Source of the DNA: Paraphysomonas bandaiensis
Taxonomy: Eukaryota > Protista > Chrysophyceae
Assembly: GCA_965644295.1 (NCBI GenBank)
Contig: CBFFRP010000463.1
Span: 72,992 to 136,991, forward strand
Direction: 5' to 3'
Length of the DNA: 64,000 nt
The notes under the pieces were generated by a model, which saw nothing but the letters and a program-made list of their open reading frames with translations, made no database searches and was not told where the DNA came from. Below are positions 48,964-64,000 of the stretch, one piece after another. Made by a program: the position numbers and the translations under genes. How positions within the stretch are numbered: position 1 is the stretch's first letter; every line of letters begins with the position of its first letter.

Positions 48964-49646
48964 AGGCGTCCTGGGGGCACAATAACATTACTTTAAAAGG
49001 AATAAAACAGCTATATCTTTTAGTGTGTAGTCAAAAGTCAAAAGAATATCAATACACGAATTACAACATCATTAACAGAAGCACACAAATTCACTGTTAT
49101 AAAAGTATACATAATACCAACAGTATGGAACTATTCAAGCAGCCACTAATCTACCTTCTACGAGTTACTTGTGCTCTTGCATGGCGCCATAAGATTCATG
49201 TGGCAACAAAGGCAGGGGATGTCAATCAAAGAAGATTATAGATATGCCAATATTTACTCATATATTTCTGATTCCTACACCTGTTCATCTGAAAGACTCC
49301 TATATTCGATCTCATCGGAGTATAAGAGTGGCTAGCAGGACTATGAATGCATGTTCTTCGAGATCTAGAAGCAACTGCTCCACGTTGGCCTTTTATAGCC
49401 CTAGCTGTGTCGATAGAGCATCGAGCTGGGTCCCTCGTCCAACTGGAAAGCCATTCACAGGGGAGTTGTGAACACAATGTACCTTCCTGCTTCTATATGT
49501 TGGCAGTGAGTGTGCTGTATGTTGGAAAGGAAAATGTCAGAAAACCCCCCAAAAAAGCAAAAACCCCTCCAATGTGTCCATTCTGGCACTGAACCACCAA
49601 AAAACCCCCCAACCGTGTCTTGATCGGCACCGGGCTCTAGGAAATT

Positions 49647-50183
49647 ATGAAGAAGTCGAGCAACGAGAAGCTCAAGAAGTTTAGGAACAAGGCGTTGGAC
49701 CAGCGGTCCAGGGGCCAAGGGGCAGAGGCATTGACCCCAACGGTGCCGATTCTGAAGTATGGGACGAACACCAACCTGGCGGTATTTAAGCAGAAGCTCA
49801 CAGTGGCCGCCATGATGCTATTTGGTGACCTAGCGAGGCTCGTGGAGACCGATGAGTATTATGAACCACCCAAGATAAAGATTGAGGACTACGATCTCGA
49901 TAATGACCCCCACGGTCTGAACCTGGAAGAACTTAAGGATGCGAGAAAGACACGCCAAAGGAAGATTGACCAAATGCGTGACAACCGATCAGCTTTCTAT
50001 GCGTTCATGTATGACAGACTGAGCAACGAGTCCGTGGACGCGATTAAGCAATTGGAGGAATACGAAGAGATTAACTCCTCCAAGGACCCTCTACTGTTGT
50101 GGCTTGCTATCAAGCAGACTCACAAAACAGCGACGAACTCCAATGTAGGGACCATCATGCGTGCAGAGACGAGAAAGAAGTAC
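49647..50183 (+). pseudogene. 5' part of a Ty1/copia gag, interrupted by the viral element
   Basis: VPILKYG...FGDLARLVETDEYYEPP...KDPLLLWLAIKQTH...AETRKKY resembles stramenopile copia Gag. Coding character and GC content collapse after 50183. Confidence 0.7.
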
Positions 50184-50338
50184 ACACACAGAGAGGGGGA
50201 GGGCCGAGGGGTCGCTCTAAGCCGCTTAGGCATTCTTCCTGAGCCAGAAAGGCTCTCGTATCGTAATAAAACTTCGTTTTATTACTCTTTCCTTTTCACT
50301 CTATCTTTCTTCCTTTCCACTCTATCTTTAAATATAAT

Positions 50339-50440
50339 AATTATCTTATATAATAATATTAATAATACTATACTTTAAATAAAAATTAATTATCTTATAT
50401 AATAATATTAATAATACTATACTTTAAATAAAAATTAATT
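50339..50440 (+). repeat. 49-bp tandem duplication in the viral terminus
   Basis: AATTATCTTATATAATAATATTAATAATACTATACTTTAAATAAAAATT at 50339 and 50388. Confidence 0.9.
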
Positions 50441-50566
50441 ACTTTATATAATATTAAATAATTATCTTATAATAAAATAAAAATATAGTTTTGGCATTTT
50501 GGCTTTCTGGCATTTTGGCTTTTATGAAAATTAGAAAAAGTTATAAAATAAAATTTATTATATAGT

Positions 50567-50675
50567 TTATGTTATAAAAATCCAGTGCCATAATGCCAGT
50601 TGTGGTGGTGATGATGATGGTGGTGTTGTAACAGTGATGGTTATGTTATAAAAATCCAGTGCCATAATGCCAGTT
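50567..50675 (+). repeat. 35-bp direct repeat pair flanking a 39-bp GT-rich spacer
   Basis: TTATGTTATAAAAATCCAGTGCCATAATGCCAGTT at 50567-50601 and 50641-50675. Confidence 0.9.
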
Positions 50676-50942
50676 TCTATTCAAAATATTTTTTCAAAAT
50701 AATTTATCAAAAATATTTATTCTATTCAAAATATTTATTCTATTCAAAATAATTTATCAAAAATATTTATTCTATTCAAAATATTTTTTCAAAATAATTT
50801 ATCAAAAATATTTATTCTATTCAAAATATTTATTCTATTCAAAATATTTTTTCAAAATAATTTATCAAAAATATTTATTCTATTCAAAATATTTTTTCAA
50901 AATAATTTATCAAAAATATTTATTCTATTCAAAATAATTTTT
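50676..50942 (+). repeat. Viral repeat array 1 (45-bp unit and truncated variants)
   Basis: Four copies of TCTATTCAAAATATTTTTTCAAAATAATTTATCAAAAATATTTAT, interleaved with 18- and 32-bp deletion variants. Confidence 0.95.
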
Positions 50943-51159
50943 ACGTTATTACCAATTAAAAAATTATTAAAAAGCAAAATGGTTTAAAGAGATAATTTTA
51001 AAAAGGCCATGAAAGATGTCAAAAAGAAAAAACGGATGAAGGTTAATAAATAGTTGAATACACACACGCAACAAACAATAAACAAAATAGTTTTAAAAAA
51101 TCGGCTCCTTTCTTTAAAGTATGATTAAAGTTTTAAAAAATATATAAAACAAATATATA

Positions 51160-51402
51160 ATGAGTTACACATATGTCGTTATTACAATTACAGATTTAGT
51201 TTGGAATAACACAAAAATATATGAAATTTACAAAACAAAAATCACTAATCCAATAAAGTTCTCAGAAAAGGTTGATAAAAGAATAGAGATAATACGAAAT
51301 AAAATATTTTCAGAAAATGATTATACCTCAGAAGATATTAAAAGATTTAATGAAGAAAATGAAATAAATTATGAGGAGATTGATAGTATTTATAATTTAT
51401 AA
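51160..51402 (+). CDS. Viral hypothetical protein (80 aa)
   Basis: ATG-initiated ORF preceded by the shared upstream motif. Confidence 0.6.
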   Translation: MSYTYVVITITDLVWNNTKIYEIYKTKITNPIKFSEKVDKRIEIIRNKIFSENDYTSEDIKRFNEENEINYEEIDSIYNL

Positions 51403-51422
51403 TAATTTAATGTATTAGTGTT

Positions 51423-51572
51423 TTAATTTATAAAAATTAAAACTAAAAGAAATTTTTGAGTACAATTTGATAATTTTGTATGAATAAATTTATCGTTATC
51501 TTCATCATAATAACCGTTTAATTCACTATCAACATGTCCACAACAATCAAAATATTTAATTCCATAACCCAT
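51423..51572 (-). CDS. Viral small protein (49 aa; not in the ORF track)
   Basis: MGYGIKYFDCCGHVDSELNGYYDEDNDKFIHTKLSNCTQKFLLVLIFIN, preceded by TATTTTTA-TCT-AACA-TATAT-ATATA. Confidence 0.45.
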   Translation of the reverse strand: MGYGIKYFDCCGHVDSELNGYYDEDNDKFIHTKLSNCTQKFLLVLIFIN

Positions 51573-51599
51573 TATATATATATATGTTAGATAAAAATA

Positions 51600-52397
51600 T
51601 TACTCTGTTGTTGAATCTAAACTCCATGTATCACCTGTCAATCTAAAATTGATAGTGTTAAACATAATATAACCTGCTGAGGCAATAACAATTCTTATAA
51701 TTGAATATCTTTTAGTTGTTGTAACTGCTTCAGTGAACAAAGTTGAATCTTGTGTTCCTGGAAATGCTACATCATCAATATAATTCCAAGTTGTGCCATC
51801 ATCAGAACCTAATATATAGCATGCTTTCATTGTTCTCTCTTGTGATGTGCTTCTTTCTTGAGTTGATATAGATGTTAAACGAATTTTATAAGGTAATTGA
51901 ACTTGAACCCATTCACCATCTATTGATTGAGATGTATCATATGTAGTTGAAAAATAATGATCTGTTCCATTACTACCGATGTAATTACCTGTTGTACCAT
52001 CATAAGCTTCACCAGAAGGCATAGCATAAAAAACGCCATCTCTGTAATTGTCAATACCATTTGGTCCGCTGTTATATCTGTTATTACCCCAGAACGTCTC
52101 ATCACTATCATCAAATAATAAGTTACATGAATTTAAAGGGTCGGCTCCAGTATATCTACCATATGATGAACAAATTAAATTATATGTTCCATTTGCGTAA
52201 GATGTTGAACCAGAACCGCCAGAATAAGATTTAGAAATGTGAGTATCAAAAACATCCTGACCATTAAAAGCAGTTGGAAGACCTGTAAATGATGTAGGAA
52301 AAGTGACATTTGTTTGGTATTGTGTATTTGTATTACCTTGAACGACATTGTATTTGTTAATGTGATTAGCAATATTAATAATAGAACTTAGTGACAT
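51600..52397 (-). CDS. Viral protein with discoidin/F5-8-type C (galactose-binding-like) domain
   Basis: GEWVQVQLPYKIRLTSI and ILGSDDGTTWNYI motifs; S/T/G/N-rich, like a receptor-binding protein. Confidence 0.7.
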   Translation of the reverse strand: MSLSSIINIANHINKYNVVQGNTNTQYQTNVTFPTSFTGLPTAFNGQDVFDTHISKSYSGGSGSTSYANGTYNLICSSYGRYTGADPLNSCNLLFDDSDETFWGNNRYNSGPNGIDNYRDGVFYAMPSGEAYDGTTGNYIGSNGTDHYFSTTYDTSQSIDGEWVQVQLPYKIRLTSISTQERSTSQERTMKACYILGSDDGTTWNYIDDVAFPGTQDSTLFTEAVTTTKRYSIIRIVIASAGYIMFNTINFRLTGDTWSLDSTTE

Positions 52398-52469
52398 ATA
52401 TATATTGATGTTATAAAATAATTTGTAATTTTTACATTAAATAATTATATAGTATAAATATATATAACC

Positions 52470-53525
52470 ATGAGCATTTACCCAAAGCCGAAACCATCAA
52501 ACGGAGTATTCAACCCTTCAAATTACACATATATAAAAGATAGCATTGTTGACGTTGACTTAACAGGATATATTCAAAAGAGTGGAGATGTAATGAGTGG
52601 AACTCTAGTTTTGCCATCATTGAATTTATATGGAGATGGACAAGTATCATTCAATGACAATTCAATACAAACAACAGCAATGACAGATGCTTTAAAGACA
52701 GATATTGAAAACACGAAAACAAAAGCTACTAATATTTCATATGATGGAACAAATACATCAATTTCAGGAAGTGTTGAAGTATCAAAAATAATATTTCCAA
52801 ATCTAAGTGAACAAACAGTGGCCTTTACAAATAATTTAAAAACAACATATGATAACTATGAAACAGGAAAACAAGATTTGATAACATCAGGAAATAGAAT
52901 AAGTTGTAGTTTAATAGGAGATGGATTAATAACAAATGATGAACTAAACAAACTAAATAATGTTTCATCAAACATTCAAAATCAATTAGACGCCTTAGGA
53001 CATGGTTTAGGTAGCATATCAAAATTATATGAATTTAACAAGGGTGAAATGATAGGTTATAATTCAACTAATATCACTAATGGTAATATTTCAGGAATTA
53101 TATCAGTTGGTTCTGGTGTGTTATATGCATCAAGCGTTAATATATCATATACTAGTGAATACAATGTTTTAGCGCCATATACGCCAGATGTAGATGACTT
53201 TTTTGATAACTTGGGTTATATTAAAAAATTAGGTAGATTCTTAATCATACATCAATATGAACTTGGAACACTTGAATCTATTAACCATTTTTTTACTCAT
53301 ATAGAATTACATAAAAACAATGTTTTACACAAAAAATCAAGAAAATCTGGACAACATTGGAAAGCTAATAGAGGTTCTATTGAATATATAACAGGTGAAA
53401 TTTCTTTCTACATAACTGTAGATGAATTATCAACATATGCTTTATTCTTTTATTCTGATTTTGATTTTGACGGTGCAAGCAGTGATACCACTTTAAAATC
53501 AACAATAGAAATCATACAAATATAA
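52470..53525 (+). CDS. Putative fibre/spike protein
   Basis: N-terminal MSIYPKP...VFNPSNY, fibre-type YIQKSGDVMSGTL and a short coiled segment VSSNIQNQLDAL. Confidence 0.6.
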   Translation: MSIYPKPKPSNGVFNPSNYTYIKDSIVDVDLTGYIQKSGDVMSGTLVLPSLNLYGDGQVSFNDNSIQTTAMTDALKTDIENTKTKATNISYDGTNTSISGSVEVSKIIFPNLSEQTVAFTNNLKTTYDNYETGKQDLITSGNRISCSLIGDGLITNDELNKLNNVSSNIQNQLDALGHGLGSISKLYEFNKGEMIGYNSTNITNGNISGIISVGSGVLYASSVNISYTSEYNVLAPYTPDVDDFFDNLGYIKKLGRFLIIHQYELGTLESINHFFTHIELHKNNVLHKKSRKSGQHWKANRGSIEYITGEISFYITVDELSTYALFFYSDFDFDGASSDTTLKSTIEIIQI

Positions 53526-53572
53526 AAAGAATGAATATATTTTTCTAAACAATGTTATATATACAGTATAAG

Positions 53573-54268
53573 ATGGTTGATATAGTAAATTTTTATGAAT
53601 TAGACGAAGTAAAAGCCTTTCAAACAGAATCTATTAATCCTAACTATGGAAAACATGGAATCAAAGTGCCTTTTAGAATGTTAATCGTTGGAGCATCTGG
53701 AGCGGGTAAATCAAATATAGTTTTGAATATGATTCGTATTATGAATAATACGTTTCACAAGATTATCTTGTATACAAGAAACAAGAAAGAACCGTTATAT
53801 GAATACTTAGAAAATAAGTTAGAAGACAATGATGACTTATTTGAAGTTCACGAAGGTTTAGATCATTTAAGAAGTGTTAACATTGATAAAGAATATTTCG
53901 GACAAACGCTAATTATATTTGATGACTTAGTTAATGAGAAGAATCAAGATATAATAGGTGAAATGTTCTTAAGAGGTCGCAAAATAGGTATATCATTAAT
54001 GTATTTGACTCAGAAATACGCAAAAGTTCCAACACTAGTTAGAGAGCAATTAAATTATTTAATAATGAAGAAGATAAGTGGAAAAAGAGATATAACTTAT
54101 TTAATGAGAAATCATGCTTTAAATGGAAGTATTGAGCAATTATTAAACATGTATCAGTATTGTATAGATGACAAAATAACGAACTTTTTATTAATTGATT
54201 TAGAAGCACCAAGTGAAAGAGCATTCAGAAAGAACTTCAATGATATATTAAATATAGAAGCATTTTAA
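53573..54268 (+). CDS. A32-like FtsK/HerA DNA packaging ATPase
   Basis: PFRMLIVGASGAGKS (Walker A), LIIFDD (Walker B), RGRK arginine finger, YLTQ sensor. The start at 53573 (MVDIVNFY) is preferred over 53552 from the position of the upstream motif. Confidence 0.95.
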   Translation: MVDIVNFYELDEVKAFQTESINPNYGKHGIKVPFRMLIVGASGAGKSNIVLNMIRIMNNTFHKIILYTRNKKEPLYEYLENKLEDNDDLFEVHEGLDHLRSVNIDKEYFGQTLIIFDDLVNEKNQDIIGEMFLRGRKIGISLMYLTQKYAKVPTLVREQLNYLIMKKISGKRDITYLMRNHALNGSIEQLLNMYQYCIDDKITNFLLIDLEAPSERAFRKNFNDILNIEAF

Positions 54269-54303
54269 TTATAAAAAAATATGTTGTTATTATATATAAA
54301 AAC

Positions 54304-55701
54304 ATGTTATCCAGTTTTGAAATAAGAAGATTGAGTCCAAAGGAAAGAGCAAAATATTTTAGACAAAAGGAACTAAACGACTTAAAAATATTATCAGATA
54401 TTAGTAAGAATATATCAGAAGAGCAACAACACTTAAAAGAAGGTATAACACCAGAACTAAGAGATAATAGAACATTAGCAGAAAAAGAAGAAGATAAAGT
54501 ATTACAATCACAGACAGCACAAAAGAACGCTTTGAAGTTGTTTAAAAATGACGGCAATGAGGCACAAGACTTTTTGAATAAATTAAAAAATAGTAGATAT
54601 AAAAACTTTGTTGACTTTAACAAATATTTTTTAGGTATGTTTTCTTCTTTATCTAATAAGGTAGGTAAAGTGAGAGCGCAAGAAATGTATGACTTTGTAC
54701 ATAGATATCTTGAAAATCAAAAAAACACATCAGGAATAAGAAATCTTTTATCATCAGAACAAGAAGTTGATGCAATAATACGACATTTAACTAGTATAGC
54801 GGGTATATCAAACGAAACTAAAAATGATTTAAATGATAGACTTGAAGCATTGCAACTAACTTTAGAATCATTGATTAAGAAGTATGGAGAAAGTAAAGTG
54901 AAACAAGCTTATGAAATGTCAGATTTACCTGATTTTGATGAAGAAGTTGATGAAGACACAATTGTTCCAGAAATACAAAAGATAGACAAAAATTCATTAG
55001 AAAGTTTCACAAGACAATTTCAAAATTACCCAGTTTCTGATGATTACTCAGTTTCTGATTCAATATCATCAATAACAGATCAAGATAAAGATTTTCATAT
55101 TTATAGCAACACTGATTATGACTTTAGCTTTGACGAAGAGAAAGAAGAGAAAGAAGAGACTGAGATGAAAGAAGTAAAAGAAGTATATGATGAAAAGACT
55201 CAACGAGCTATAAATAAAGTAAATTCCATGACATTAGAAGAAATGAAGGCAATGTCAGCTAATGTGGTAAGATTGATTAGAATATTGAATCAAGGAGGAG
55301 ACGAATATAAAGATAGTTCAACACGAGTTAATAAAGATGACTTGAAATCTTATAATGAAGTTGCGCCACTCTTTACACCAAAAGGCGGAAAAGCTACAGG
55401 AATACAAAAGAAGAGTTTATATAAATTTGTCAAAGACTCAGGAATCAAAACAATAGATAAAATATTAAGAGAAAGAATAGCAGAACAAGAAGGAAATATA
55501 GCAGAAGCAAAACAACCAAGAGAACCGAGAAAATCAATTACACGAACTATACACGATATAAGAAGAGAAGAAGAAATGAAAAGAAAAGATGACGATGAAG
55601 ATGAAGATGAAGTAGAAGAAGAACCACAAGAAGACATTATAAAAGATGGCAACGGATTAAATATTAAAAAGGTTGGAAGTATGAGAGTTAGATTTGGTTA
55701 A
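54304..55701 (+). CDS. Viral hypothetical helical/charged protein (465 aa), possible core protein
   Basis: Long ORF in the morphogenesis cluster; K/E/D-rich; GxG motif near the C-terminus. Confidence 0.75.
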   Translation: MLSSFEIRRLSPKERAKYFRQKELNDLKILSDISKNISEEQQHLKEGITPELRDNRTLAEKEEDKVLQSQTAQKNALKLFKNDGNEAQDFLNKLKNSRYKNFVDFNKYFLGMFSSLSNKVGKVRAQEMYDFVHRYLENQKNTSGIRNLLSSEQEVDAIIRHLTSIAGISNETKNDLNDRLEALQLTLESLIKKYGESKVKQAYEMSDLPDFDEEVDEDTIVPEIQKIDKNSLESFTRQFQNYPVSDDYSVSDSISSITDQDKDFHIYSNTDYDFSFDEEKEEKEETEMKEVKEVYDEKTQRAINKVNSMTLEEMKAMSANVVRLIRILNQGGDEYKDSSTRVNKDDLKSYNEVAPLFTPKGGKATGIQKKSLYKFVKDSGIKTIDKILRERIAEQEGNIAEAKQPREPRKSITRTIHDIRREEEMKRKDDDEDEDEVEEEPQEDIIKDGNGLNIKKVGSMRVRFG

Positions 55702-55750
55702 TATTTAATAGTATAAAATATAATATAATATAATAGTATATTATATAATA

Positions 55751-56209
55751 ATGACAATTAAAAAGAACTACAAGAAGTTTTACAAACTACAAATAAATGT
55801 AATGAAGCTATTAGACAATAAGTTAATGATATTATACGAAACAGGATCACCATTCAGCAGATATATAAAGACACAAACAATAAGCCCCGAGTTTGCGAGT
55901 GTGTTGTTAAACTTAATTGACACAAATGAACTAAATTATGAAATGATAAAACGATTAACAGAAGAAGAGAAGAAGTTATTTAACATTATAATGACACAAT
56001 CAGGAGCAAAGACAGAATTGAAATACAAAGAGCCAGAACTAACGGAAGAAGATTTATTAAAGCGATTTGAAATATTACAAGGGAGTATTCGAGCAGGAAA
56101 CAACAGTAATGAAGTATTGAAAGAAGGAATAGACATATTGAAAAGACTAAATAAGCTAGGTAGAATAGATGATGAACAGTTAAATGAAATCTTAAATAGT
56201 TTAGAATAA
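55751..56209 (+). CDS. Polinton/PLV-type hypothetical protein with AGN motif
   Basis: The C-terminal LLKRFEILQGSIRAGNNSNEVLKEGIDILKRL...GRI resembles a motif I recall from proteins encoded between the ATPase and penton in Polinton-like elements. Confidence 0.65.
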   Translation: MTIKKNYKKFYKLQINVMKLLDNKLMILYETGSPFSRYIKTQTISPEFASVLLNLIDTNELNYEMIKRLTEEEKKLFNIIMTQSGAKTELKYKEPELTEEDLLKRFEILQGSIRAGNNSNEVLKEGIDILKRLNKLGRIDDEQLNEILNSLE

Positions 56210-56247
56210 CTATTTACAAAAATTATTATATAAGTAAATATTATATA

Positions 56248-57135
56248 ATGTCAGACACAAATTATAACTACAATACAATTATATTGAATAAAAACAATAT
56301 AGTTTCAGGTTCAAAGAATTCAGTATTCAAATATACTTTTAATCAATCATTACGACTAAATGATTGTTCATTAGCTATTCAAAGCATAAATATGTATTAC
56401 AGTTGGTTTAATATATCAGATTATTTCAGAAACAATAAATTTTCATATGTATGGTTTGACAATGCAGGAGACTTGAACACAACTATAGATATTACAATTC
56501 CAGATGGATTTTATACAGTTGAATTATTGAATAAATTTTTACAATCTGAACTAGAGAAAAGGGGTCATTATTTAATTCAACAAAGCACGGGTGATTTTGC
56601 TTATCACATAGAATTCATTTCAAATGTAAGTTATTATTCAGTTCAATTGAATGTATATGCAATGATGACAGCAGCTCAAGCAGGAACAGATTTCGTCAAA
56701 GGTTCAGAGACTTGGTCTTATCCTTCAACACCAACAACACCTCAATTAGTTGTTTCAAATTCTTCTTCATTTGGAGACTTAATAGGATATTCTAATGGAT
56801 CGTATCCATCAACAGCATCAAGCACAAACACAACTTTTTTATCAGATAAGACACCAAATATGACGCCTGTTAGCTCTATAAACGTCGTTTGTTCAATGAC
56901 TACTCAAAACGGCTTTAGCAATCCTGATGGACTGTTATATTCATTTACAAGTGGCAGTGTTGAATTTGGAGGTATGATAGATAGAGAACCAAAAACAGAG
57001 TCATTTGTTAAAGTGAGAGATGCTTTATATTCAAGTTTTACAATAGAACTATACGACCAAGATATGAGAAGATTAGATATAAGAGACGCTGAAACGGTTA
57101 TAATGTTAATTATTAAGAGTCCTGATAAAGATTAA
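56248..57135 (+). CDS. Minor capsid protein (penton, single jelly-roll)
   Basis: 295 aa and beta-rich, with LAIQSINMYYSWFNIS...NNKFSY, ITIPDGFYTVELLN and a C-terminal IELYDQD...LDI, typical of Polinton/PLV pentons; lies upstream of the major capsid gene. Confidence 0.75.
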   Translation: MSDTNYNYNTIILNKNNIVSGSKNSVFKYTFNQSLRLNDCSLAIQSINMYYSWFNISDYFRNNKFSYVWFDNAGDLNTTIDITIPDGFYTVELLNKFLQSELEKRGHYLIQQSTGDFAYHIEFISNVSYYSVQLNVYAMMTAAQAGTDFVKGSETWSYPSTPTTPQLVVSNSSSFGDLIGYSNGSYPSTASSTNTTFLSDKTPNMTPVSSINVVCSMTTQNGFSNPDGLLYSFTSGSVEFGGMIDREPKTESFVKVRDALYSSFTIELYDQDMRRLDIRDAETVIMLIIKSPDKD

Positions 57136-57178
57136 AACGATATAGTATATTTTTTTATATAATACTATTATATACGAT

Positions 57179-57478
57179 ATGTCATATTATAAAATGATAG
57201 GTGGAACAATGAGAAGACAAGTAATTCCTTCTCATAGAAAAGAAATACAAGAAGAAACAAAAGAAGATAAGATAAAAGAAGACGTAATTATTGAACATAA
57301 ACAGAAAGTGGAAAACACAAAGAAACCTAATATAAGTTTAAGTGATAAACTAATGAGTATTAAGGTGAAACCAAGAACAGAAGGGAAAGGACAAGATAGA
57401 AGCAAAGATGAGTTATTTGAGCGTGTAAACAATGTATCAATGGAAAGATTAAAAAAATTTGCTAATTTAAAAGTATAG
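57179..57478 (+). CDS. Small basic viral protein (99 aa), possible processed core protein
   Basis: K/E-rich, with MIGG and EGKG motifs. Confidence 0.65.
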   Translation: MSYYKMIGGTMRRQVIPSHRKEIQEETKEDKIKEDVIIEHKQKVENTKKPNISLSDKLMSIKVKPRTEGKGQDRSKDELFERVNNVSMERLKKFANLKV

Positions 57479-57480
57479 AA

Positions 57481-57625
57481 TATTTTATTCTATTCAAAAT
57501 ATTTTTCCAAAATTATTTATTCTATTCAAAATATTCTATTCAAAATATTTTTTCAAAATATTTTTTCAAAAATATTTATCAAAAATATTTATTCTATTCA
57601 AAATATTTTTTCAAAATTATTTATT
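57481..57625 (+). repeat. Viral repeat array 2, directly upstream of the major capsid gene
   Basis: Same TTCTATTCAAAATATTTTTTCAAAA / ATCAAAAATATTTAT subunits as array 1, rearranged. Confidence 0.9.
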
Positions 57626-57662
57626 ATAAAATATTTTATAATCTAAGTATATATTATACAAT

Positions 57663-59351
57663 ATGGACAAGGCAATAGTTGACCAATCTTTTGAACAAGC
57701 ACATGAGAATGTAAGTGACTTTGTGGAGTGGGATTATAGCAAAGTAAGTGATTTGCAGACTTCTGGTAATTATAGCAGTAACCAGACAATATTTGAAACG
57801 ACCACACTCAGCAACAACGGTAAAATAACTGATTACAAAAATGGATTTTTTACAATTCCAATAGTGGATGTTGTGACTGGTGAAAACGGTGGTAATCCCG
57901 TTGACTTTACAGCAGCGCACATAAAAGAGAGTGATTTGTTACTATGTAGGAAAAATTCAAGTTTAAATATGATAGATTCAGTATCTATTCAATATCAAAA
58001 TCAAGCAGGAATTCAAGAGACAAGAAATATTAATCAATACTTAATATTTAAACAACATTCAGAAATGTCATTAGATGATGAATATGTTAACGGTCCTACA
58101 ATAGGATATGCCAAAGACACGTCGGATTCATGGAGCTATGATGAAGCTAACGGATTAATGAACAACAATAATGCTTTGAATCATTTAAATGGTATTGATT
58201 ACATAAATAAATGTAATAAAGGAATGTATGAAAGACAACAAGTTTTTAATAAAGTTGTTGATACTGCCAATTTATCTAAAAGAAATTTGGTATTGGGTAA
58301 TAATGAAAAAATTAAAGAAATGAATCGCAGTTATGTTGTGAACACTGCAACATATAAAGCCTATTATCATAATGCTATTATTCGTCTTAAAGACCTTTCA
58401 ACCATATTCGAGAAATCACCCCCAATGAAAGGTGGCCTTTTCAAAATATCAATCAATTTTAACCAGTGTATATTCAAAGTGACTAAAACAGACAACGACA
58501 CAATGTCATTTTCTCCAGCAGATTTTAACGGAAGAGGAACAAATCCTTTGATGGTTTCAAGTTCTCAATATGAAACTTTATCCGGTAGTGATAATAACTC
58601 AGTAACTTCAGACGATGTATACTGTGGTGGATACACAATTCCAGATGGAACAGTGTTGACAATTTCCAGCAATATAGCAAAACCTCAATTTTACCCACAT
58701 AATACACTTAATGTTACTCCATGTAAAGAACAGAACTGTTTTCTTCACATTCCTTCTTATACAATGAAACCTGCTCTCCAGAAAAGATATTTAGAGAGTC
58801 CACAAAAACAAGTTATATATAATGATGTTGTTTTATTTCAACTTTTCAATAAAACAGGTCAAGTTAATGAACTGATTACAAACGGCCTGTCATACGCAAA
58901 GAGAATGATTATTTGTCCTTTTATTAGCTCAGGGGCTAATGGAACAAATCAGATTCACCCGTTTCAATCACCTTTCACAACTGAACCCGCAACCTGTAGT
59001 CCTTATACCATTCAAAATCTTCAAGTTAAAGTATCATCAACTAATTTATATCCTAATCAAATTAATTATTCATATGATATGTTTATGAGAGAGTTAAATG
59101 GTAAATATGGAGTAAATTTTAACTTAACAACTGGTTTATGTAGTTCAAGAATCAATTTAAAAGACTTCATTAATACATACGGTTATATCGTAGTTGACCT
59201 AAAACGTAAACACACTGATGACGAAAGCGTCCCCTTATCTATTCAGCTTGAATGTAATATATCAAGTCCCAAACCACTTGATTTCAATATTTTTGTAGAA
59301 CAAGAGAAATCATTCGGAATTGAAGTAGCAACAGGAAAAAGAGTAGATTAA
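57663..59351 (+). CDS. Major capsid protein (putative double jelly-roll)
   Basis: 562 aa and the largest gene of the module. The N-terminal VSDLQTSGNYSSNQTIFETTTLSNNGKITDYKNGFFTIP, the internal AIIRLKDL...F...P and the C-terminal YGYIVVDL...IFVEQEK are reminiscent of PLV capsids. The ATPase-penton-MCP-protease context supports the call. Confidence 0.78.
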   Translation: MDKAIVDQSFEQAHENVSDFVEWDYSKVSDLQTSGNYSSNQTIFETTTLSNNGKITDYKNGFFTIPIVDVVTGENGGNPVDFTAAHIKESDLLLCRKNSSLNMIDSVSIQYQNQAGIQETRNINQYLIFKQHSEMSLDDEYVNGPTIGYAKDTSDSWSYDEANGLMNNNNALNHLNGIDYINKCNKGMYERQQVFNKVVDTANLSKRNLVLGNNEKIKEMNRSYVVNTATYKAYYHNAIIRLKDLSTIFEKSPPMKGGLFKISINFNQCIFKVTKTDNDTMSFSPADFNGRGTNPLMVSSSQYETLSGSDNNSVTSDDVYCGGYTIPDGTVLTISSNIAKPQFYPHNTLNVTPCKEQNCFLHIPSYTMKPALQKRYLESPQKQVIYNDVVLFQLFNKTGQVNELITNGLSYAKRMIICPFISSGANGTNQIHPFQSPFTTEPATCSPYTIQNLQVKVSSTNLYPNQINYSYDMFMRELNGKYGVNFNLTTGLCSSRINLKDFINTYGYIVVDLKRKHTDDESVPLSIQLECNISSPKPLDFNIFVEQEKSFGIEVATGKRVD

Positions 59352-59389
59352 ACAAAATATTTTTAGTATGATAATATTTAATATAAACT

Positions 59390-59414
59390 AATTATTATCT
59401 CAACATAATATATA
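59390..59414 (+). promoter_or_regulatory. Representative copy of the conserved viral upstream motif (W8-T[AC]T-N4-W5-RTATA)
   Basis: AATTATTA-TCT-CAAC-ATAAT-ATATA, 4 nt before the ATG at 59419. Equivalent copies precede nearly all viral ORFs. Confidence 0.65.
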
Positions 59415-59418
59415 TATA

Positions 59419-60207
59419 ATGCATCAAGTAAAACTCAATCTATCTGAAGCTCAATTAAGAAAGTTATCAAATGGACACAATATACAAGTTAGACCAGACC
59501 AAATCGGCTTTGGCTTTCCAGTTGCTTTATCTGACAAGAACTTGAAAAAAATTGAAAACTCTTATAATAAGTCAAAAGGAACGCGACTAACACTAGACAA
59601 TAATGAAATTGAAGGTGGCAATCTAAAACAAAACATTAGAAGTGCTTTCAATAAGACTAAGAAACAAGTTAAAAAGACATTCAAAGATCCAAACTTAGGA
59701 AGAAAGGTTAAAAATACTTCAAGAAAGGTTAAAAACACTGTCAATGATTTTGCTGTTGTTGGTGATTTAGGCATTCCCGTTGTTAGTGATTCATATAATT
59801 TATTGAATACTACTACCCGTTTAGGTGATAAGTTAGTTAGAAGTGGTGTGGACCATATTGAAGATAGAAAAGATGAAAAGAAAAGAAGTCAATTTGTTAA
59901 TGATTTTAATTCACTAAGAGAACATGCTAATACTCAATCTTCAAATTCTCCTCCAACTGAAGGAAGTGGTAATCCTTATCTTCCATCAAAGCAAGTGAAG
60001 AAAGTTAAAAATAAACTTACTACTGGCTCATCATTTAGAACATTGGGTGCTGGAGTTATAGAAGTGGATTACAAAGGAAAGAAACCCGTTAAACTTAAAG
60101 ACGATGGAAGCAATCTAGTTAGAGCTGGACATCCTGGTTTTGACCCTGGAATATCAAGTTTGCCTAATACTTGTTGTTATTGTTCTCATTGTGGAAAGAA
60201 AAAATAA
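59419..60207 (+). CDS. Basic viral protein (262 aa), putative core/membrane-active precursor
   Basis: N-terminal VKLNLSEAQLRKLSNGHNIQV; Lys-rich; several GxG/GG sites; C-terminal CCYCSHC. Confidence 0.7.
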   Translation: MHQVKLNLSEAQLRKLSNGHNIQVRPDQIGFGFPVALSDKNLKKIENSYNKSKGTRLTLDNNEIEGGNLKQNIRSAFNKTKKQVKKTFKDPNLGRKVKNTSRKVKNTVNDFAVVGDLGIPVVSDSYNLLNTTTRLGDKLVRSGVDHIEDRKDEKKRSQFVNDFNSLREHANTQSSNSPPTEGSGNPYLPSKQVKKVKNKLTTGSSFRTLGAGVIEVDYKGKKPVKLKDDGSNLVRAGHPGFDPGISSLPNTCCYCSHCGKKK

Positions 60208-60224
60208 TGTGAATATAATATATA

Positions 60225-60719
60225 ATGGATTACACAACAAGTAACATAGATTTGACACATTATCTTATGTTAAAAGGTATAAATCTTAATCAAATAGTGA
60301 GTAAGAATAAGTTATTAGGTAAAGCAAAAGAAAATGGCAATTATATTATAAACTTAGAAGATAGTGATAAAGGCATGGGTTCTCATTGGGTAGCTTTGAA
60401 GTGTTTTAAAAAAACTTGTCTATATTTTGATTCATATGGAATTGCACCTCCTAGAGAAGTTATAAGTTTTTGTAATAAGAAGAAGTTAATATATTCATGT
60501 GACCAAATACAAGGCATAAAAGACACTTCCTGTGGTTTTTATTGTGTTTACTTTCTTTATCATTTCAATAATCTAAGAAGTTTTAAAGATGATATAAGAA
60601 GTTTAGGTTATCATTTAAACTTATTTCTTAAACCTTTTGATACAAGTAACACAGAAAAGAATGTGAAGATACTAAAAAGAAGATTCAAAGAAATCTATGA
60701 AAATGACTTGAAGAAATAA
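60225..60719 (+). CDS. Adenain/Ulp1-like cysteine maturation protease
   Basis: YIINLEDSDKGMGSHWVAL (His), YFDSYG (Asp), QIQ...SCGFYC (oxyanion Gln, catalytic Cys). Confidence 0.92.
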   Translation: MDYTTSNIDLTHYLMLKGINLNQIVSKNKLLGKAKENGNYIINLEDSDKGMGSHWVALKCFKKTCLYFDSYGIAPPREVISFCNKKKLIYSCDQIQGIKDTSCGFYCVYFLYHFNNLRSFKDDIRSLGYHLNLFLKPFDTSNTEKNVKILKRRFKEIYENDLKK

Positions 60720-60778
60720 TTTTAATTTATGTTAAAGAATTATATAATTTTTTAAATCTGCAATTTATATATATATAG

Positions 60779-61324
60779 ATGAAAAAATTGACTACTCCTA
60801 GTAAACCAACAGACGCGATGCCTGAAACATATAAATCAATTGTTGAATCTGTTGAATCTGATTCAAATCCTTTTGATTCATTTAAGGCTCCTGTTATTCA
60901 AAAGCAAGAATCAATGCGTGAATTACCACCAAAAACACTTTACAATCACAATCTTAAGCGGCTTAAATCATACAGAAACTTAAGAAAGAAATATAAACTA
61001 GATAATCAAAAAACTGTATTCTTAGAAAACTTGAAAGAAACTTTAAAGCCTCTAGACCCAAGAAGCAATAAATATGATAGTGAATTATTAGTGGCTGTCT
61101 TAGATATTGCTGAATATTTTTTTATTTATGGTGATAAAGAACAAAGGAACACTATGAAAATGGAAGCTGTTGTTGAAATAATGAAACCATATTTTAACAA
61201 TGATGAAACATATTTATTGCATAGTATAAATAATGTAATGCATAAAGTTAAAAGAAGTAACATATTCAGAAGATTAGCAACAAGACTTAGAATTTTTTTT
61301 TCAATGACGATGAAAGCTTCTTAA
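60779..61324 (+). CDS. Viral hypothetical protein (181 aa), possibly extended to 61410 by a -1 frameshift
   Basis: ORF with an exact upstream motif match; it ends just after a T9 run. Confidence 0.75.
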   Translation: MKKLTTPSKPTDAMPETYKSIVESVESDSNPFDSFKAPVIQKQESMRELPPKTLYNHNLKRLKSYRNLRKKYKLDNQKTVFLENLKETLKPLDPRSNKYDSELLVAVLDIAEYFFIYGDKEQRNTMKMEAVVEIMKPYFNNDETYLLHSINNVMHKVKRSNIFRRLATRLRIFFSMTMKAS

Positions 61325-61455
61325 AGGCTCTCATTAAATCGTTGATTGTTGAGATTCTAGTTAAAGTTATTATTCAAAGAATATTCCCAATTTTATTAAT
61401 CGCATTATAAAACTATTTCATTTTATTATATATGTGTAATATATATAGTAGTAAT

Positions 61456-62142
61456 ATGTCAAAATGGATAAAACACGTAAAACAATATAGCGAACAAAAT
61501 AATATGAAGTATAATGAAGCCTTATCAGACCCTGTGTGCAGAGCATTATATTATGAAATGAAAGGTGGTGCTTTAACAGCAGATGAAACAAGAAAATTAT
61601 TAAAGTCTTCATATAATAAAAAAAACAAAGATGTAGGTAATTTTAAAGTTGATAAGCATTTATCTGGAAATAGAACAAAAGTTTATTATGATGAAGAAAA
61701 TAATATGCCCGTTGTTGTTCATCGTGGAACAAACTCTAAACAAGATGTATTAACTGATGCAGGCTTATTATTTGGACATAGAGGAAATAGATTTAAACAT
61801 GCTAAAAAAATACAAAAGAAAGCAGAAAAGAAATATGGAACTGAAAACATGCACACATTAGGGCATTCTTTAGGTGGACTCGTTGCAGAAGAAGTAGGCA
61901 AGAATTCAAAAAACGTCATTACATTTAACAAGGCAATATCACCTTTTGAAATGTTAAAAAAAAATCAATCAAATCAAACAGACATTAAAACAAGCAATGA
62001 CCCTGTATCATCATTAAATTATTTTAATAATAATAAAAAAAATAAAACTAAAGTATTTAATGCTAAAACAAATAACCCTTTTAAATCACATAGCACAGAC
62101 GCTTTGAAACATTTAAAACCTGGTAAAGTTATTGGAAATTAA
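61456..62142 (+). CDS. Class-3 lipase-like alpha/beta hydrolase with N-terminal leader
   Basis: VVVHRGT, DVLTD, GHSLGG nucleophile elbow, DPVS and a C-terminal H. The start at 61456 (MSKWIKHVK) is supported by the upstream motif, which overlaps the 61432 ATG. Confidence 0.88.
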   Translation: MSKWIKHVKQYSEQNNMKYNEALSDPVCRALYYEMKGGALTADETRKLLKSSYNKKNKDVGNFKVDKHLSGNRTKVYYDEENNMPVVVHRGTNSKQDVLTDAGLLFGHRGNRFKHAKKIQKKAEKKYGTENMHTLGHSLGGLVAEEVGKNSKNVITFNKAISPFEMLKKNQSNQTDIKTSNDPVSSLNYFNNNKKNKTKVFNAKTNNPFKSHSTDALKHLKPGKVIGN

Positions 62143-62147
62143 TATAT

Positions 62148-62531
62148 TTAAAAACAACCTGCATAAGATGTTTGTTTGGAATACTTTTTAATTACTTCTC
62201 TAGTCATTATGTGATTGTTTTCATTTTTAATTTTAAGTATGCTTTGAGGTAAATATTTGAAAACTTCTTTTTCATACCAACAAATAGGTTTAGTAAATTC
62301 AAGATGTGTTATTGTGTTAGGAATATTTTTAATAATTTTATTTAGTTTTCTCATAGATACTTCTGTATGTATCATATATTCATCACTCTTTCGAACGTTC
62401 ATGTCAAAAGGTCTTGTTAATATATAATACATTTTCGAATCTTTAAATACAATACATCTTATTTCTTTATCATTTTGTAGCTTTGAATATAAACTGTCAA
62501 TTTCTTCAATGTCAATTGTTAAAGTTTTCAT
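62148..62531 (-). CDS. Viral protein with FNIP/IP22-like repeats
   Basis: IPNTITHLEF and LPQSILKI segments. Confidence 0.5.
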   Translation of the reverse strand: MKTLTIDIEEIDSLYSKLQNDKEIRCIVFKDSKMYYILTRPFDMNVRKSDEYMIHTEVSMRKLNKIIKNIPNTITHLEFTKPICWYEKEVFKYLPQSILKIKNENNHIMTREVIKKYSKQTSYAGCF

Positions 62532-62645
62532 AATATATATATTATATATATAAAATTAGTTTTTTAAATTGTTTTATAATAAAATTATTATTTTTATTAA
62601 ATTTGAAAACTATATTTTTTATATAAACATTATTATATATACTTT

Positions 62646-62969
62646 ATGGCAGATTTTGTTATATGTTTAAAAAATGAACTCTTCGCAATACCAAAGACAA
62701 AGAAACCTCAAGTCCAAACAGAAATATCAAACATAGTAAAACAAATTGAAGGATATAAAGCCTTAATCAAAGACTTGGAAATACAGAAACGAAAAAAACA
62801 AGTTGAACTTCTCAGTGAAAGACAACAAATATATTATAAGAATCCAATCAATAGAAACTTACCAAGTGAACAACTTGAAAAAACTAAAGCTTATGAGAAA
62901 AGACAAAAGCTATTAAAAGAATATGATGATTCACACGGTTCTTATATTAAACCTGAACAAGGCTATTAA
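62646..62969 (+). CDS. Viral hypothetical coiled-coil protein (107 aa)
   Basis: ATG-initiated ORF with TATATA upstream. Confidence 0.6.
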   Translation: MADFVICLKNELFAIPKTKKPQVQTEISNIVKQIEGYKALIKDLEIQKRKKQVELLSERQQIYYKNPINRNLPSEQLEKTKAYEKRQKLLKEYDDSHGSYIKPEQGY

Positions 62970-63034
62970 TTTTTTTAAAACGTTACATATACAAATGTAT
63001 ATATAATACTAACTAACTATAATGACAACAAAAT

Positions 63035-63202
63035 TTATAGATTATACATCTTCTTATATTTCTCCATATTCATAATCATTGACTTCATCTCTTCAATCTC
63101 TTTATAACATTTCTTATGATATTCTCTTGATTCCCAATCATTGTTTATTCTTTTTATAGTTTTACCACAATGTTCGCATTTTCTTTTAATTTCTCTAGAC
63201 AT
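63035..63202 (-). CDS. Small viral zinc-binding protein (55 aa; not in the ORF track)
   Basis: MSREIKRKCEHCGKTIKRINNDWESREYHKKCYKEIEEMKSMIMNMEKYKKMYNL contains CxxC...HxxC; exact upstream motif match. Confidence 0.7.
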   Translation of the reverse strand: MSREIKRKCEHCGKTIKRINNDWESREYHKKCYKEIEEMKSMIMNMEKYKKMYNL

Positions 63203-63248
63203 GATATATAATATATATATATAATATTTTTTAAATTGTTTTATATAT

Positions 63249-63415
63249 TTTTGAAAAAATATTTTGAATAGAATAAATATTTTTGATAAATTATTTTGAA
63301 AAAATATTTTGAATAGAATAAATATTTTTGATAAATTATTTTGAAAAAATATTTTGAATAGAATAAATATTTTTGATAAATTATTTTGAAAAAATATTTT
63401 GAATAGAATAAATTA
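63249..63415 (-). repeat. Viral repeat array 3 (inverted relative to arrays 1 and 2)
   Basis: Three copies plus a partial copy of ATAAATATTTTTGATAAATTATTTTGAAAAAATATTTTGAATAGA, the exact reverse complement of the 45-bp unit of array 1. Confidence 0.95.
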
Positions 63416-63418
63416 TTT

Positions 63419-64000
63419 TTAATAATATGAACCTATATTTGATATTACTTTCGTTGGTGATGTTCCTGAATTAGTATATATTATTGTTATTGTTTGCAAT
63501 ATTGCTCCTGATGTTGTCACATCGTCTACATTAATATTTGCGAGTCCTCCTGACACATTCAACGTTTCTGAAACCGCATTAACTTTCAAGGTGTTTATAT
63601 GTGCTTTGTAACTTGATGTATCTATTATAACAGAAACTGTAAAACTTGTATTTGTTAAGTTACTTGAATTAATATTCGTTATATCAAGTTCAAAATTTGT
63701 ATCACTTGTTAAACCATTGAAATATATAATTGAACCATTGCTATAATTATATGTCAACACATTTGAAGAAAACGTATATGTTGTGCTGATGGATTCGCTT
63801 ATTTGTTTAGTTGTTATATTTCCTGTCATTGTTCCGCCTGTTAAATTCAATTTTGTATTTTCAAGTGTTGTAATATTGCCGTCTATTGTACTTAACAAGT
63901 TATCAATTGTATCAGTAAATGTATAGTTATAAACTAATTCAGAATTTAACATGTTATTTACGTCGATTAAATCATGCTTATCACTTTGTAAGTTTGTTAT
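63419..64000 (-). CDS. C-terminal part of a second fibre-like protein (start outside the window)
   Basis: The frame stays open from 64000 (ITNLQSDKHDLIDVNNMLNSELV...). KLNLTGGTMTGNI fibre motif and a T/S/N-rich beta C-terminus. Confidence 0.7.
   Translation of the reverse strand: MTNLQSDKHDLIDVNNMLNSELVYNYTFTDTIDNLLSTIDGNITTLENTKLNLTGGTMTGNITTKQISESISTTYTFSSNVLTYNYSNGSIIYFNGLTSDTNFELDITNINSSNLTNTSFTVSVIIDTSSYKAHINTLKVNAVSETLNVSGGLANINVDDVTTSGAILQTITIIYTNSGTSPTKVISNIGSYY

Follow-up and report, generated by a model that had tools for sequence, protein, structure and literature searches.

The window, by which we mean the whole 64,000-nucleotide stretch of Paraphysomonas bandaiensis DNA analysed here, closes with an AT-rich, virus-like element, in front of whose open reading frames a motif resembling the late promoters of giant viruses had been noticed. 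The question raised by this locus is what kind of virus it holds and whose transcription machinery reads its genes.

An integrated virus of the adenovirus/virophage capsid lineage

At about position 50,380, the GC content falls from ~40-50% to ~27% and stays low through 64,000; the DNA of the element is 73% A+T, and its intergenic stretches are about 90% A+T. The genes in the flanking DNA are eukaryotic (kinesin, C2H2 zinc-finger, RIO2, sulfatase, and Copia-type RT), and the element is integrated in the nuclear DNA of this marine protist. Its right end is missing from the window because the window end cuts the element. The landmarks are as follows:

50380..64000, no strand: AT-rich integrated element, left border from composition, right end beyond the window
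50322..50675, no strand: left junction zone with tandem and direct repeats (49-nt x3, 16-nt x2, 35-nt x2)
50675..50942, +: repeat array A, AT-rich 13-18-nt units forming a 45-nt super-unit, 14-mer unit x8
57479..57641, +: repeat array B, directly 5' of the major capsid gene
63242..63426, -: repeat array C, which repeats array A in inverted orientation

The inverted repeats A and C are 96-99% complementary, and element DNA runs on beyond C. Array B is also found, with variable copy number, in the relatives L022 and L024. The 14-mer unit common to the three arrays contains a TCTA core in AT-rich context. The genes of the element are:

51160..51402, +: 80-aa ORF, no homolog found in the search
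51423..51572, -: 49-aa ORF, likewise no homolog found in the search
51600..52397, -: 265-aa protein with F5/8 type C (discoidin, lectin-like) domain (Pfam PF00754, E = 3.6e-9), homologs in L015, L018, L020, and L023
52470..53525, +: 351-aa conserved protein, homologs in L018, L020, L021, and L023, no match in Pfam or PHROG
53573..54268, +: A32-type DNA-packaging ATPase (Pfam Pox_A32, E = 5e-17), start backed by a 231-aa gene call in L023
54304..55701, +: 465-aa conserved protein, no function assigned from Pfam, PHROG, and the relatives compared
55751..56209, +: 152-aa conserved protein, homologs in every syntenic relative
56248..57135, +: penton (minor capsid) protein, single jelly roll in the AlphaFold2 model (pLDDT 94.7)
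57179..57478, +: 99-aa protein, kept in close relatives only
57663..59351, +: major capsid protein, double jelly roll in the AlphaFold2 model (pLDDT 86)
59419..60207, +: 262-aa conserved protein
60225..60719, +: adenain-like cysteine protease (Pfam Peptidase_C5, E = 4e-5, above the cut-off; PDB adenain, E = 0.0055)
60779..61324, +: 181-aa conserved protein
61456..62142, +: 228-aa lipase / alpha-beta-hydrolase-like protein with weak Pfam matches, 57% identical to part of the 'Phospholipase-like' proteins of L015 and L020
62148..62531, -: 127-aa ORF with a weak DUF1390 match only
62646..62969, +: 107-aa conserved protein
63035..63202, -: 55-aa ORF
63419..64000, -: 3' part of a large gene, open frame reaching base 64000, where the window end cuts it

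The capsid module comprises a capsid protein of the double-jelly-roll fold, a penton, an ATPase of the A32 type, and an adenain-like protease. The product of the truncated large gene is homologous to the C-terminus of 1105-1113-aa proteins in L018 and L020 and, by composition only, appears repeat-rich and fibre-like. No pPolB, primase-helicase, or integrase was found in the 13.6 kb of the element inside the window; the element continues past 64000. Its gene order is the same as in 17-24-kb metagenomic genomes bearing primase, helicase, and rve integrase, as seen in L015 (AEP primase) and L021 (helicase plus rve-chromodomain integrase).

The top Foldseek matches of the penton model were the mavirus penton (6g41/6g42), the adenovirus penton base, and the Sputnik penton; the capsid model retrieved the capsid proteins of faustovirus, mavirus, Sputnik, and Qinghai Lake virophage (E ~1e-12 to 1e-14). 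Searched as a single sequence and as a 31-sequence profile, the capsid protein gave no match to the Sputnik and mavirus capsid chains at E <= 1, and none of the groups named in the searched structure libraries was close to it. Its likeness to virophage proteins lies at the level of the fold only and equals that with giant-virus capsid proteins. A virophage in the strict sense (Sputnik/mavirus class) was rejected, as the capsid protein fails to group with virophage capsids by sequence. In sum, we identify ~50,380-64,000 as the left part of an integrated polinton-like/virophage-like virus of the adenovirus/virophage capsid lineage.

A two-part motif at a fixed position before the genes

In DNA of such composition, a degenerate pattern might be a by-product of AT richness or of TA microsatellites, or it might reflect the context of translation initiation instead of a promoter. 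We searched region 50,400-64,000 for the pattern given in the initial annotation, W8-T[AC]T-N4-W5-[AG]TA[TG]A, and recovered 10 exact matches in front of the genes for which they had been reported, 52470, 54304, 55751, 59419, 60779, and 61456 (+) and 51572, 62531, and 63202 (-); since two matches overlap, these are 9 sites. Every exact match in the element ends 0-10 nt from a gene ATG, as described, and host bases 1-50,000 contain none. In 500 dinucleotide-preserving shuffles, the mean was 0.20 and the maximum 3. The matches with one mismatch before 51160, 52397, 56248, 57179, 57663, and 60225 were also reproduced. A 1-nt spacing shift had been proposed for two genes; it holds for 62646, which matches exactly with a 5-nt spacer, and not for 53573, whose best fit has 3 mismatches. 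The latter is the sole detail of the earlier motif observation left unconfirmed.

The core TATATA describes the element more sharply than the original pattern. The complete genes (17/17) all have this hexamer with its end 0-9 nt ahead of the ATG (in one of them it overlaps the A of the ATG), which bears out the statement that nearly every viral ORF is preceded by the motif. Within 18 nt upstream, it is present at 17/17 gene starts compared to 15/495 (3%) other ATGs of the element (p = 2e-23). Of the AT-rich control upstream regions, 4/19 have it. A distal block, T[A/C]TA, lies exactly 13 nt upstream of the hexamer start (-13 to -10) in 10/17 genes, a count reached by 0/5000 shuffles. This block is 16-28 nt from the ATG and has TATA as its majority form (10/17) and TCTA once; the nine columns 5' of it hold no G and two C. 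The ORF start at 63952 (-) is without the motif and serves as a negative control, because it is internal to the gene that runs off the window end. Gene by gene, the candidate promoters are:

51132..51159, +: promoter of 51160, hexamer 51154-51159, 0 nt to ATG
51573..51600, -: promoter of 51572, exact match, hexamer adjoins ATG
52397..52424, -: promoter of 52397, hexamer shares the A of ATG
52439..52466, +: promoter of 52470, exact match
53536..53563, +: promoter of 53573 (ATPase), hexamer 9 nt from ATG
54271..54298, +: promoter of 54304, exact match
55720..55747, +: promoter of 55751, exact match
56220..56247, +: promoter of 56248 (penton), hexamer 0 nt from ATG
57147..57174, +: promoter of 57179
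57626..57653, +: promoter of 57663 (major capsid), hexamer 9 nt from ATG
59391..59418, +: promoter of 59419, exact match
60197..60224, +: promoter of 60225 (protease), overlaps the 3' end of the preceding gene
60750..60777, +: promoter of 60779, exact match
61420..61447, +: promoter of 61456, exact match
62534..62561, -: promoter of 62531, exact match
62614..62641, +: promoter of 62646, exact match with 5-nt spacer
63205..63232, -: promoter of 63202, exact match

The 60 nt directly 5' of the major capsid ATG are identical in four relatives, and the promoter region of 63202 (-) is 82% complementary to that of the capsid gene. Compared to L023, a 97% identical relative from an ocean metagenome, 0 of the 216 promoter positions (A/T run, distal block, and hexamer) have changed, whereas divergence amounts to 5.7% at codon position 3, 1.2% at position 2, and 11.9% in the leader between hexamer and ATG, the fastest changing part. 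At the position-3 rate, the chance of 0/216 changes is about 3e-6; the promoter positions are under purifying selection. The ATG-adjacent motif was furthermore found in L018 (14/16), L001 (10/16), L020 (7/16), L021 (9/22), L015 (4/18; GC 39%), L005 (4/8), and L003 (3/8; GC 40%), each of these seven relatives greatly exceeding its rate at other ATGs. The motif recurs at only 35-50% capsid identity and persists in relatives of 39-41% GC. In L004 and L013, the ATG-adjacent motif is absent, which looks like lineage-specific promoter types.

The shuffles, the comparison with other and AT-rich control starts, the fixed offset of the distal block, the unsubstituted promoter positions next to a fast-changing leader, and the motif's persistence at higher GC already contradict an origin in composition or translation context, and we give that explanation hardly any probability. 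A Kozak-like role is disfavoured because the spacing between hexamer and ATG varies from 0 to 9 nt. Coding sequence shows no depletion of TATATA (8 observed vs 9.4 expected), which agrees with a compositional origin and counts against the promoter reading that we prefer. The motif is nevertheless real, fixed in position, conserved, and a promoter-like element under selection.

Promoter class and the candidate polymerase

The motif had been likened to the late promoter that mimivirus shares with Sputnik and to the late element of CroV and mavirus. The mimivirus late promoter consists of two ~10-nt AT-rich segments with ~4 degenerate nt between them (PMC5294985), and the two-block form agrees with this verbal description; the literature assigns the hexamer at the ATG to ASFV-like viruses. 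The CroV/mavirus late promoter has a TCTA core in AT-rich flanks (PMC8547959), and this part of the claim found no support: TCTA is not enriched, being present <=40 nt upstream in 3/17 genes vs 67/494 other ATGs (13.6%). The mimivirus-type early motif AAAATTGA occurs in 6 copies on both strands, all within coding sequence and none upstream of a gene, and a search of the element for mimivirus-style hairpins at gene 3' ends found none. That the helper is a close relative of these viruses, with the motif being specifically their late promoter, would be in keeping with the two-block form, with the C tolerated in the distal block (TCTA) of a minority of genes, and with the TCTA core in the array units. 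Given also the capsid protein without sequence-level match to those of Sputnik and mavirus, we consider it improbable.

TATATA at the start is the late initiator of ASFV-like viruses, described also for faustovirus, kaumoebavirus, and pacmanvirus (PMC5294985, PMC11788076, PMC9116030); none of these three sources describes it as a mimivirus or CroV motif. ASFV late promoters combine an AT-rich upstream element with TATATA at -1 to +5, and poxvirus late promoters have a core and an initiator, with a 5'UTR of almost nil (PMC5294985). The second AT-rich block that the ASFV type has ~10-15 nt upstream is present here as T[A/C]TA (10/17) plus a near-pure A/T run. By this comparison, the promoter would fit the core-plus-initiator late type of giant viruses (ASFV-like TATATA).

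A different explanation dispenses with a giant virus: host RNA polymerase II might read the element, which would then be a polinton-like virus of an autonomous, lysogenic type, with the distal T[A/C]TA as TATA box, the hexamer region as initiator, and very short leaders. TATATA is indeed a classic cellular TBP site, purifying selection on the promoter would be expected here too, and some protists use very short leaders, which counts against our preferred reading. The spacing speaks for the latter. A cellular Pol II TATA-box promoter, for which ~25-35 nt plus a 5'UTR are expected, would not fit the distances of hexamer (0-9 nt) and distal block (16-28 nt) from the ATG; with the hexamer this close, there is no space for a TATA box ~30 nt before the start followed by a leader. 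Both distances are shorter than host ORFs suggest, several of which in the window have TATA-like runs ~55-70 nt before the first ATG (first ATGs of unspliced ORFs, not of annotated genes). Furthermore, one uniform promoter per gene is the pattern described for virophages, and no element proteins were present among MMETSP transcript-derived proteins, though a host transcript of the same organism was, which is weak evidence. Conversely, polinton-like viruses can replicate independently of a giant virus (PMC10945749), and protist transcriptomes contain the capsid genes of many endogenous elements (PMC10120064). We regard transcription by the host polymerase as rather unlikely, with a substantial share of the probability left to it; the geometry of motif and ATG fits giant-virus late promoters better than a Pol II TATA box.

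In our preferred model, the 17 complete genes would be 17 separate transcription units, each with its own ~28-nt two-part promoter: an A/T run ending in T[A/C]TA, a ~9-nt spacer, and TATATA, its end 0-9 nt from the ATG. If the core-plus-initiator late promoters of large cytoplasmic DNA viruses are a guide, transcription may start in or beside the hexamer, in which case mRNA leaders would be only ~5-15 nt. The late machinery of a co-infecting giant virus, not host RNA polymerase II, would read these promoters and, because all genes share one promoter class, we infer that the whole element is switched on together with that machinery and is otherwise quiet. The late motif of the helper is carried by Sputnik, by mavirus and the endogenous elements of Cafeteria, and by the Loki's Castle virophages; PgVV, the one well-studied polinton-like virophage, has its helper's early motif instead, which counts against the model. 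On balance, a polinton-like virus with one late-type promoter read by a co-infecting giant virus seems to us the probable, by no means certain, solution. The helper-virus and virophage interpretation put forward initially is partly supported, and a virophage-like lifestyle is plausible, since the promoter layout resembles giant-virus late promoters.

Comparison with known systems

Like mavirus and the EMALEs of Cafeteria burkhardae, the element is a small dsDNA virus integrated in a protist genome, with double-jelly-roll capsid protein, penton, packaging ATPase, and cysteine protease, and with one conserved AT-rich promoter type on essentially all genes, the motifs differing between relatives. 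The mavirus penton is the best structural match of the modelled penton. In place of the TCTA core of mavirus, the element has TATATA at the ATG together with T[A/C]TA, and its capsid protein is without sequence-level similarity to that of mavirus; unlike in mavirus and EMALEs, pPolB and integrase are lacking from the part within the window, and host GC is 40%, not 70%.

With the mimivirus late promoter on Sputnik, Zamilon, and Guarani, compared by verbal description, the element shares two AT-rich segments and a degenerate spacer upstream of virophage genes. However, that promoter precedes only about half of the genes of Sputnik and 24% of the late genes of mimivirus, compared to 17/17 here, and hairpin 3' signals like those of the mimivirus system were not found. 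The ASFV-type late promoter (faustovirus, kaumoebavirus, pacmanvirus, and the pacmanvirus transpoviron) resembles that of the element in TATATA, in an AT-rich block lying ~10-15 nt upstream, and in its minimal leader (PMC5294985, PMC11788076), the latter if transcription of the element starts where we propose. The published upstream block is TATTT, whereas that of the element consists of an A/T run and T[A/C]TA. In the literature consulted, none of the virophages and polinton-like viruses has an asfarvirus-like helper.

Among the polinton-like viruses compared (PgVV / Gezel-14T, TsV-N1, Tetraselmis PLVs, and Chrysochromulina parva virus PLVs), PgVV differs in carrying its helper's early motif on some genes only, whereas the element has a single late-type motif before every gene, and the capsid protein of the element stands apart from all groups named in those structure libraries. 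In common with polinton-like viruses are the size class of the element's relatives (17-24-kb contigs), a modular gene order with a variable replication/integration module (L015 and L021), a lipase-like and a putative fibre-like gene, and the occurrence both as integrated copies and in ocean metagenomes.

An integrated viral element and its marine relatives

The DNA of the window outside the element is eukaryotic nuclear in character, with a GC content of ~40%. Near base 50,380, the GC content drops to ~27% and stays low until the window ends, which marks the AT-rich, polinton-like or virophage-like element with 17 complete, closely packed genes and one gene cut by the window end. Each of the 10 genes that could be compared with L023, an ocean-metagenome relative with 97% identity, is equal or almost equal in length to its counterpart there. 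We found no breaks by stops or frameshifts (0 cases), the rightmost gene being truncated by the window end and not disrupted. Four genes represent the hallmark virion-building set of the polinton, virophage, and adenovirus lineage.

Virion genes of the element
A32-type packaging ATPase: Pfam match, E = 5e-17
Adenain-like protease: protein family matches and structure-database sequence matches
Major capsid protein: double jelly roll, 562 aa, structure model with pLDDT 86
Penton: 295 aa, structure model with pLDDT 94.7

The capsid protein and the penton were identified by fold comparison only. The capsid model matched the capsid proteins of faustovirus, mavirus, and Sputnik (Foldseek E ~1e-12), and the best fold matches of the penton were the mavirus penton, the adenovirus penton base, and the Sputnik penton. 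By sequence, neither protein matched a solved structure, with single sequences or with profiles, which sets the lineage apart from the named virophages. A PHROG scan of 10 element proteins gave no matches.

Relatives of the element are abundant. One search returned 73 homologs of the capsid protein, and the penton yielded 1,442 representative clusters. Metagenomic contigs of 17 to 24 kb are syntenic with the element and share its gene order; among the relatives, L015 additionally carries an AEP primase, and L021 a helicase and an rve-chromodomain integrase. Three ocean-metagenome contigs, one of them a Tara Oceans scaffold, are 94 to 97% identical to the element at the DNA level. Protein fragments at least 90% identical to its capsid protein, penton, and protease come from the 0.45- to 0.8-µm and 0.22- to 3-µm Tara Oceans fractions, which would agree with free particles as well as with a very small host. 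These fragments (clusters P0194, P0195, P0204, and P0219) were sampled at station 125 (surface, 0.45 to 0.8 µm) and station 76 (0.22 to 3 µm). An exact look-up of the window's capsid protein gave no match, and therefore, the full-length genome of this exact virus has not been recovered. The element is a new, clean member of an unnamed but very common marine lineage present in Tara Oceans and other metagenomes.

Genes in the host region encode a kinesin, a C2H2 zinc-finger protein, a RIO2 kinase, and a sulfatase. A transcript of the MMETSP (JGI 3300017004) shows 100% identity to the RIO2 exon, and the nearest named homologs of the exon are from stramenopiles (Ectocarpus and Ochromonas, 55 to 61% identity). 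Hence, the host is a marine protist in culture, and an animal, human, or plant origin of the DNA is excluded. The entire window was scanned for Rfam families and tRNAs, without a match. The host stretch from 24300 to 25100 is locally AT-richer (34% GC) with several (TA)n runs, and a 20-nt (TA)n run lies ~50 nt (49 nt) upstream of the first ATG of the C2H2 zinc-finger open reading frame (ORF) at 25113. Two features lie close to the virus junction.

Host features next to the element
46926-47224 and 48668-48966: 299-nt direct repeats, 99% identical, of an apparently degraded Copia-type retroelement
49647-50378: 243-aa ORF, ~50% GC, without a family match; its end is the exact start of the AT-rich element

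The 1.4-kb remnant between the repeats still encodes the C-terminus of a reverse transcriptase of the Copia type (RVT_2), and the whole stretch from 46926 to 48966, 1.4 kb from the junction, looks like a degraded LTR retroelement.

A two-block motif at the gene starts

The initial annotation had described the pattern W8-T[AC]T-N4-W5-[AG]TA[TG]A before the ATGs of the element. This was borne out almost to the letter, with 9 exact sites and 6 sites with one mismatch, and all exact matches end 0 to 10 nt upstream of a gene's ATG, as claimed. The 50 kb of host DNA contain not a single exact match, and the average of the dinucleotide shuffles is 0.2 matches. Of the two sites said to differ by a 1-nt spacing shift, the one at 62646 is exact with a 5-nt spacer, whereas 53573 does not fit.

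De novo counting led to a sharper description. The hexamer TATATA ends 0 to 9 nt before the ATG in 17 of 17 genes, compared to 15 of 495 other ATGs (p = 2e-23). A distal block, T[A/C]TA, starts exactly 13 nt 5' of the hexamer in 10 of the 17 genes, a count matched by none of 5000 shuffles, and the nine columns 5' of this block are almost purely A/T, often with 5 to 7 T or A in a row. Across the promoters from 51132 to 63232, the run consists of 5 to 7 T in about half and of A in the remainder. Since the intergenic spaces are so short, the run may double as a 3'-end mark of the preceding gene; in pacmanvirus, a T-rich motif has been reported at 3' ends (PMC11788076). Among the listed ORF starts, the motif is missing from one alone, 63952 on the minus strand, which is internal to a longer gene. 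An expectation-maximisation search found the two-block motif again, both in the window and in the relative L018, but was noisy in higher-GC relatives, and therefore, anchored counts were used instead. Within genes, TATATA is not avoided (8 observed versus 9.4 expected).

Three independent lines, selection, conservation depth, and economy, say that the motif is functional. Compared to L023, there is no change at 216 promoter positions (A/T run, distal block, and hexamer), whereas codon position 3 differs by 5.7%, codon position 2 by 1.2%, and the bases between hexamer and ATG by 11.9%; comparisons with the relatives L024 and L022 give the same picture. Likewise, the 60 nt directly before the capsid ATG are identical in 4 of 4 sequences, whereas the adjoining upstream repeat array varies. 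The ATG-adjacent motif is found again in relatives with only 35 to 50% capsid identity, including genomes of 39 to 41% GC, and is therefore not an effect of composition there. Finally, the promoter occupies almost all of the space between genes (17 to 72 nt) and in some cases reaches back into the end of the preceding gene. Judged by these comparisons, the motif is under measurable purifying selection and conserved across a large marine family, and an artefact is very unlikely. Two other relatives are entirely without the ATG-adjacent motif. Such differences in motif presence between relatives are also seen in the endogenous virophages of Cafeteria, of which different types carry different motifs (PMC8547959).

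Repeat arrays and an inverted segment

Three repeat arrays lie within the element.

Repeat arrays of the element
50,675-50,942: array A, 8 copies of a 14-mer
57,479-57,641: array B, 4 copies of the 14-mer, directly before the capsid gene
63,242-63,426: array C, 4 copies of the 14-mer

All are built from the same AT-rich units of 13 to 18 nt with a 45-nt super-unit, every 14-mer holds a TCTA core, and each array is oriented sense to the next gene. The copy number of array B varies among the 94 to 97%-identical relatives, and an exact search of IMG/VR and JGI metagenomes with a 34-nt stretch of the arrays gave no matches. Arrays A and C are inverted repeats, 96 to 99% complementary and 12.3 kb apart. 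The simple reading as terminal inverted repeats was rejected, since AT-rich DNA and a conserved gene continue past array C. This gene is the counterpart of a large fibre-like gene that adjoins an F5/8-domain gene in the relatives L018 and L020. Relative to the gene order of these two, the 12.3-kb segment between arrays A and C (50675-63426) is inverted, and L021 has yet another arrangement; hence, inversions seem to be common in the family. Between the promoter region of the major capsid gene (57552-57665) and that of a 55-aa minus-strand gene (63200-63313), a 114-nt stretch that extends through the ATG is 82% complementary, which points to a duplicated cassette of array plus promoter. The arrays may function as enhancers or origins, or they may be regenerated termini or inversion sites.

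Promoter class and the transcribing polymerase

The motif had been read as a giant-virus late promoter. The late core of CroV and mavirus is TCTA in AT-rich context (PMC8547959), and this assignment was not supported: TCTA is not enriched (3 of 17 genes versus 13.6% of other ATGs), and the majority form of the distal block is TATA, with TCTA occurring once. The late promoter of mimivirus consists of two AT-rich segments of ~10 nt with ~4 degenerate nt between them (PMC5294985); here, the two-segment form agrees with this verbal description. The mimivirus early motif AAAATTGA has 6 copies, none of them upstream of a gene, and mimivirus-like 3' hairpin signals were not evident (mean z = −0.45). 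The published description nearest to our motif is the late promoter of African swine fever virus (ASFV), in which an AT-rich block (−15 to −11) precedes TATATA (−1 to +5; PMC5294985). A TATATA late motif is also known from faustovirus, kaumoebavirus, pacmanvirus, and the pacmanvirus transpoviron (PMC5294985, PMC11788076, PMC9116030), and poxvirus late promoters follow the same core-plus-initiator logic with almost no 5'UTR (PMC5294985). For virophages or polinton-like viruses, the literature searched holds no report of this motif type.

The window's element has one promoter motif class only. In more distant relatives, some of the genes have a second class ~25 to 50 nt 5' of the ATG (L021, genes 12617, 12900, and 13400; L020, 14419 and 15228, both on the minus strand; L015, 2626, 3053, and 6416), with T-run-G-A-run units as an example in L021, and this may represent a second temporal class.

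Which polymerase reads these promoters? The uniform late-type promoter, the capsid genes, the missing RNA polymerase gene, and the integrated state fit the virophage model, and transcription of the element by the machinery of a giant virus is, in our view, fairly probable. Autonomous expression driven by the host is unlikely by our estimate, although autonomous polinton-like viruses (PMC10945749) and expressed endogenous capsid genes (PMC10120064) are on record. The geometry of the hexamer, only 0 to 9 nt from the ATG, speaks against a Pol II TATA box of the conventional kind; several host ORFs in the window have TATA-like runs ~55 to 70 nt before the first ATG, although this comparison is weak since the host gene models are unannotated. 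Furthermore, none of the element's proteins is found among MMETSP-derived proteins, whereas the RIO2 transcript of the host is there, which weakly suggests silence in culture. If the host polymerase were used, the element would stand for protist viruses with an unusual promoter architecture that is almost leaderless.

With transcription by a giant virus as the preferred reading, a further step is imaginable but rather improbable as a whole: the lineage would be tuned to a giant virus with an ASFV-like TATATA late initiator, and the three arrays would be a regulatory or structural device. Such a helper would either not belong to the mimivirus family or be a marine mimivirid, as yet undescribed, with a TATATA-type promoter, and the arrays could be factor-binding enhancers, sinks for the late transcription factor of the helper, or places where an inversion switch acts. 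That the element works as an inducible antiviral provirus, as proposed in the initial annotation, is speculation.

At the sequence level, the main clue to the helper of a virophage-like element is a promoter that both have in common. In Cafeteria, reportedly, only endogenous elements with the helper's late motif respond to the helper. In the element described here, this clue is unusually clean (17 of 17 genes) and can serve as a concrete key in searches for the putative partner virus of this cultured protist from the sea. The promoter type to which it points has so far been reported for asfarvirus-like viruses and not for the known helpers of virophages. In sum, the element is of an already known kind, that of integrated virophage-like elements in which every gene has a helper-type promoter. 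PgVV, the best-studied polinton-like virophage, carries an early motif, whereas the motif of our element is of the late type.
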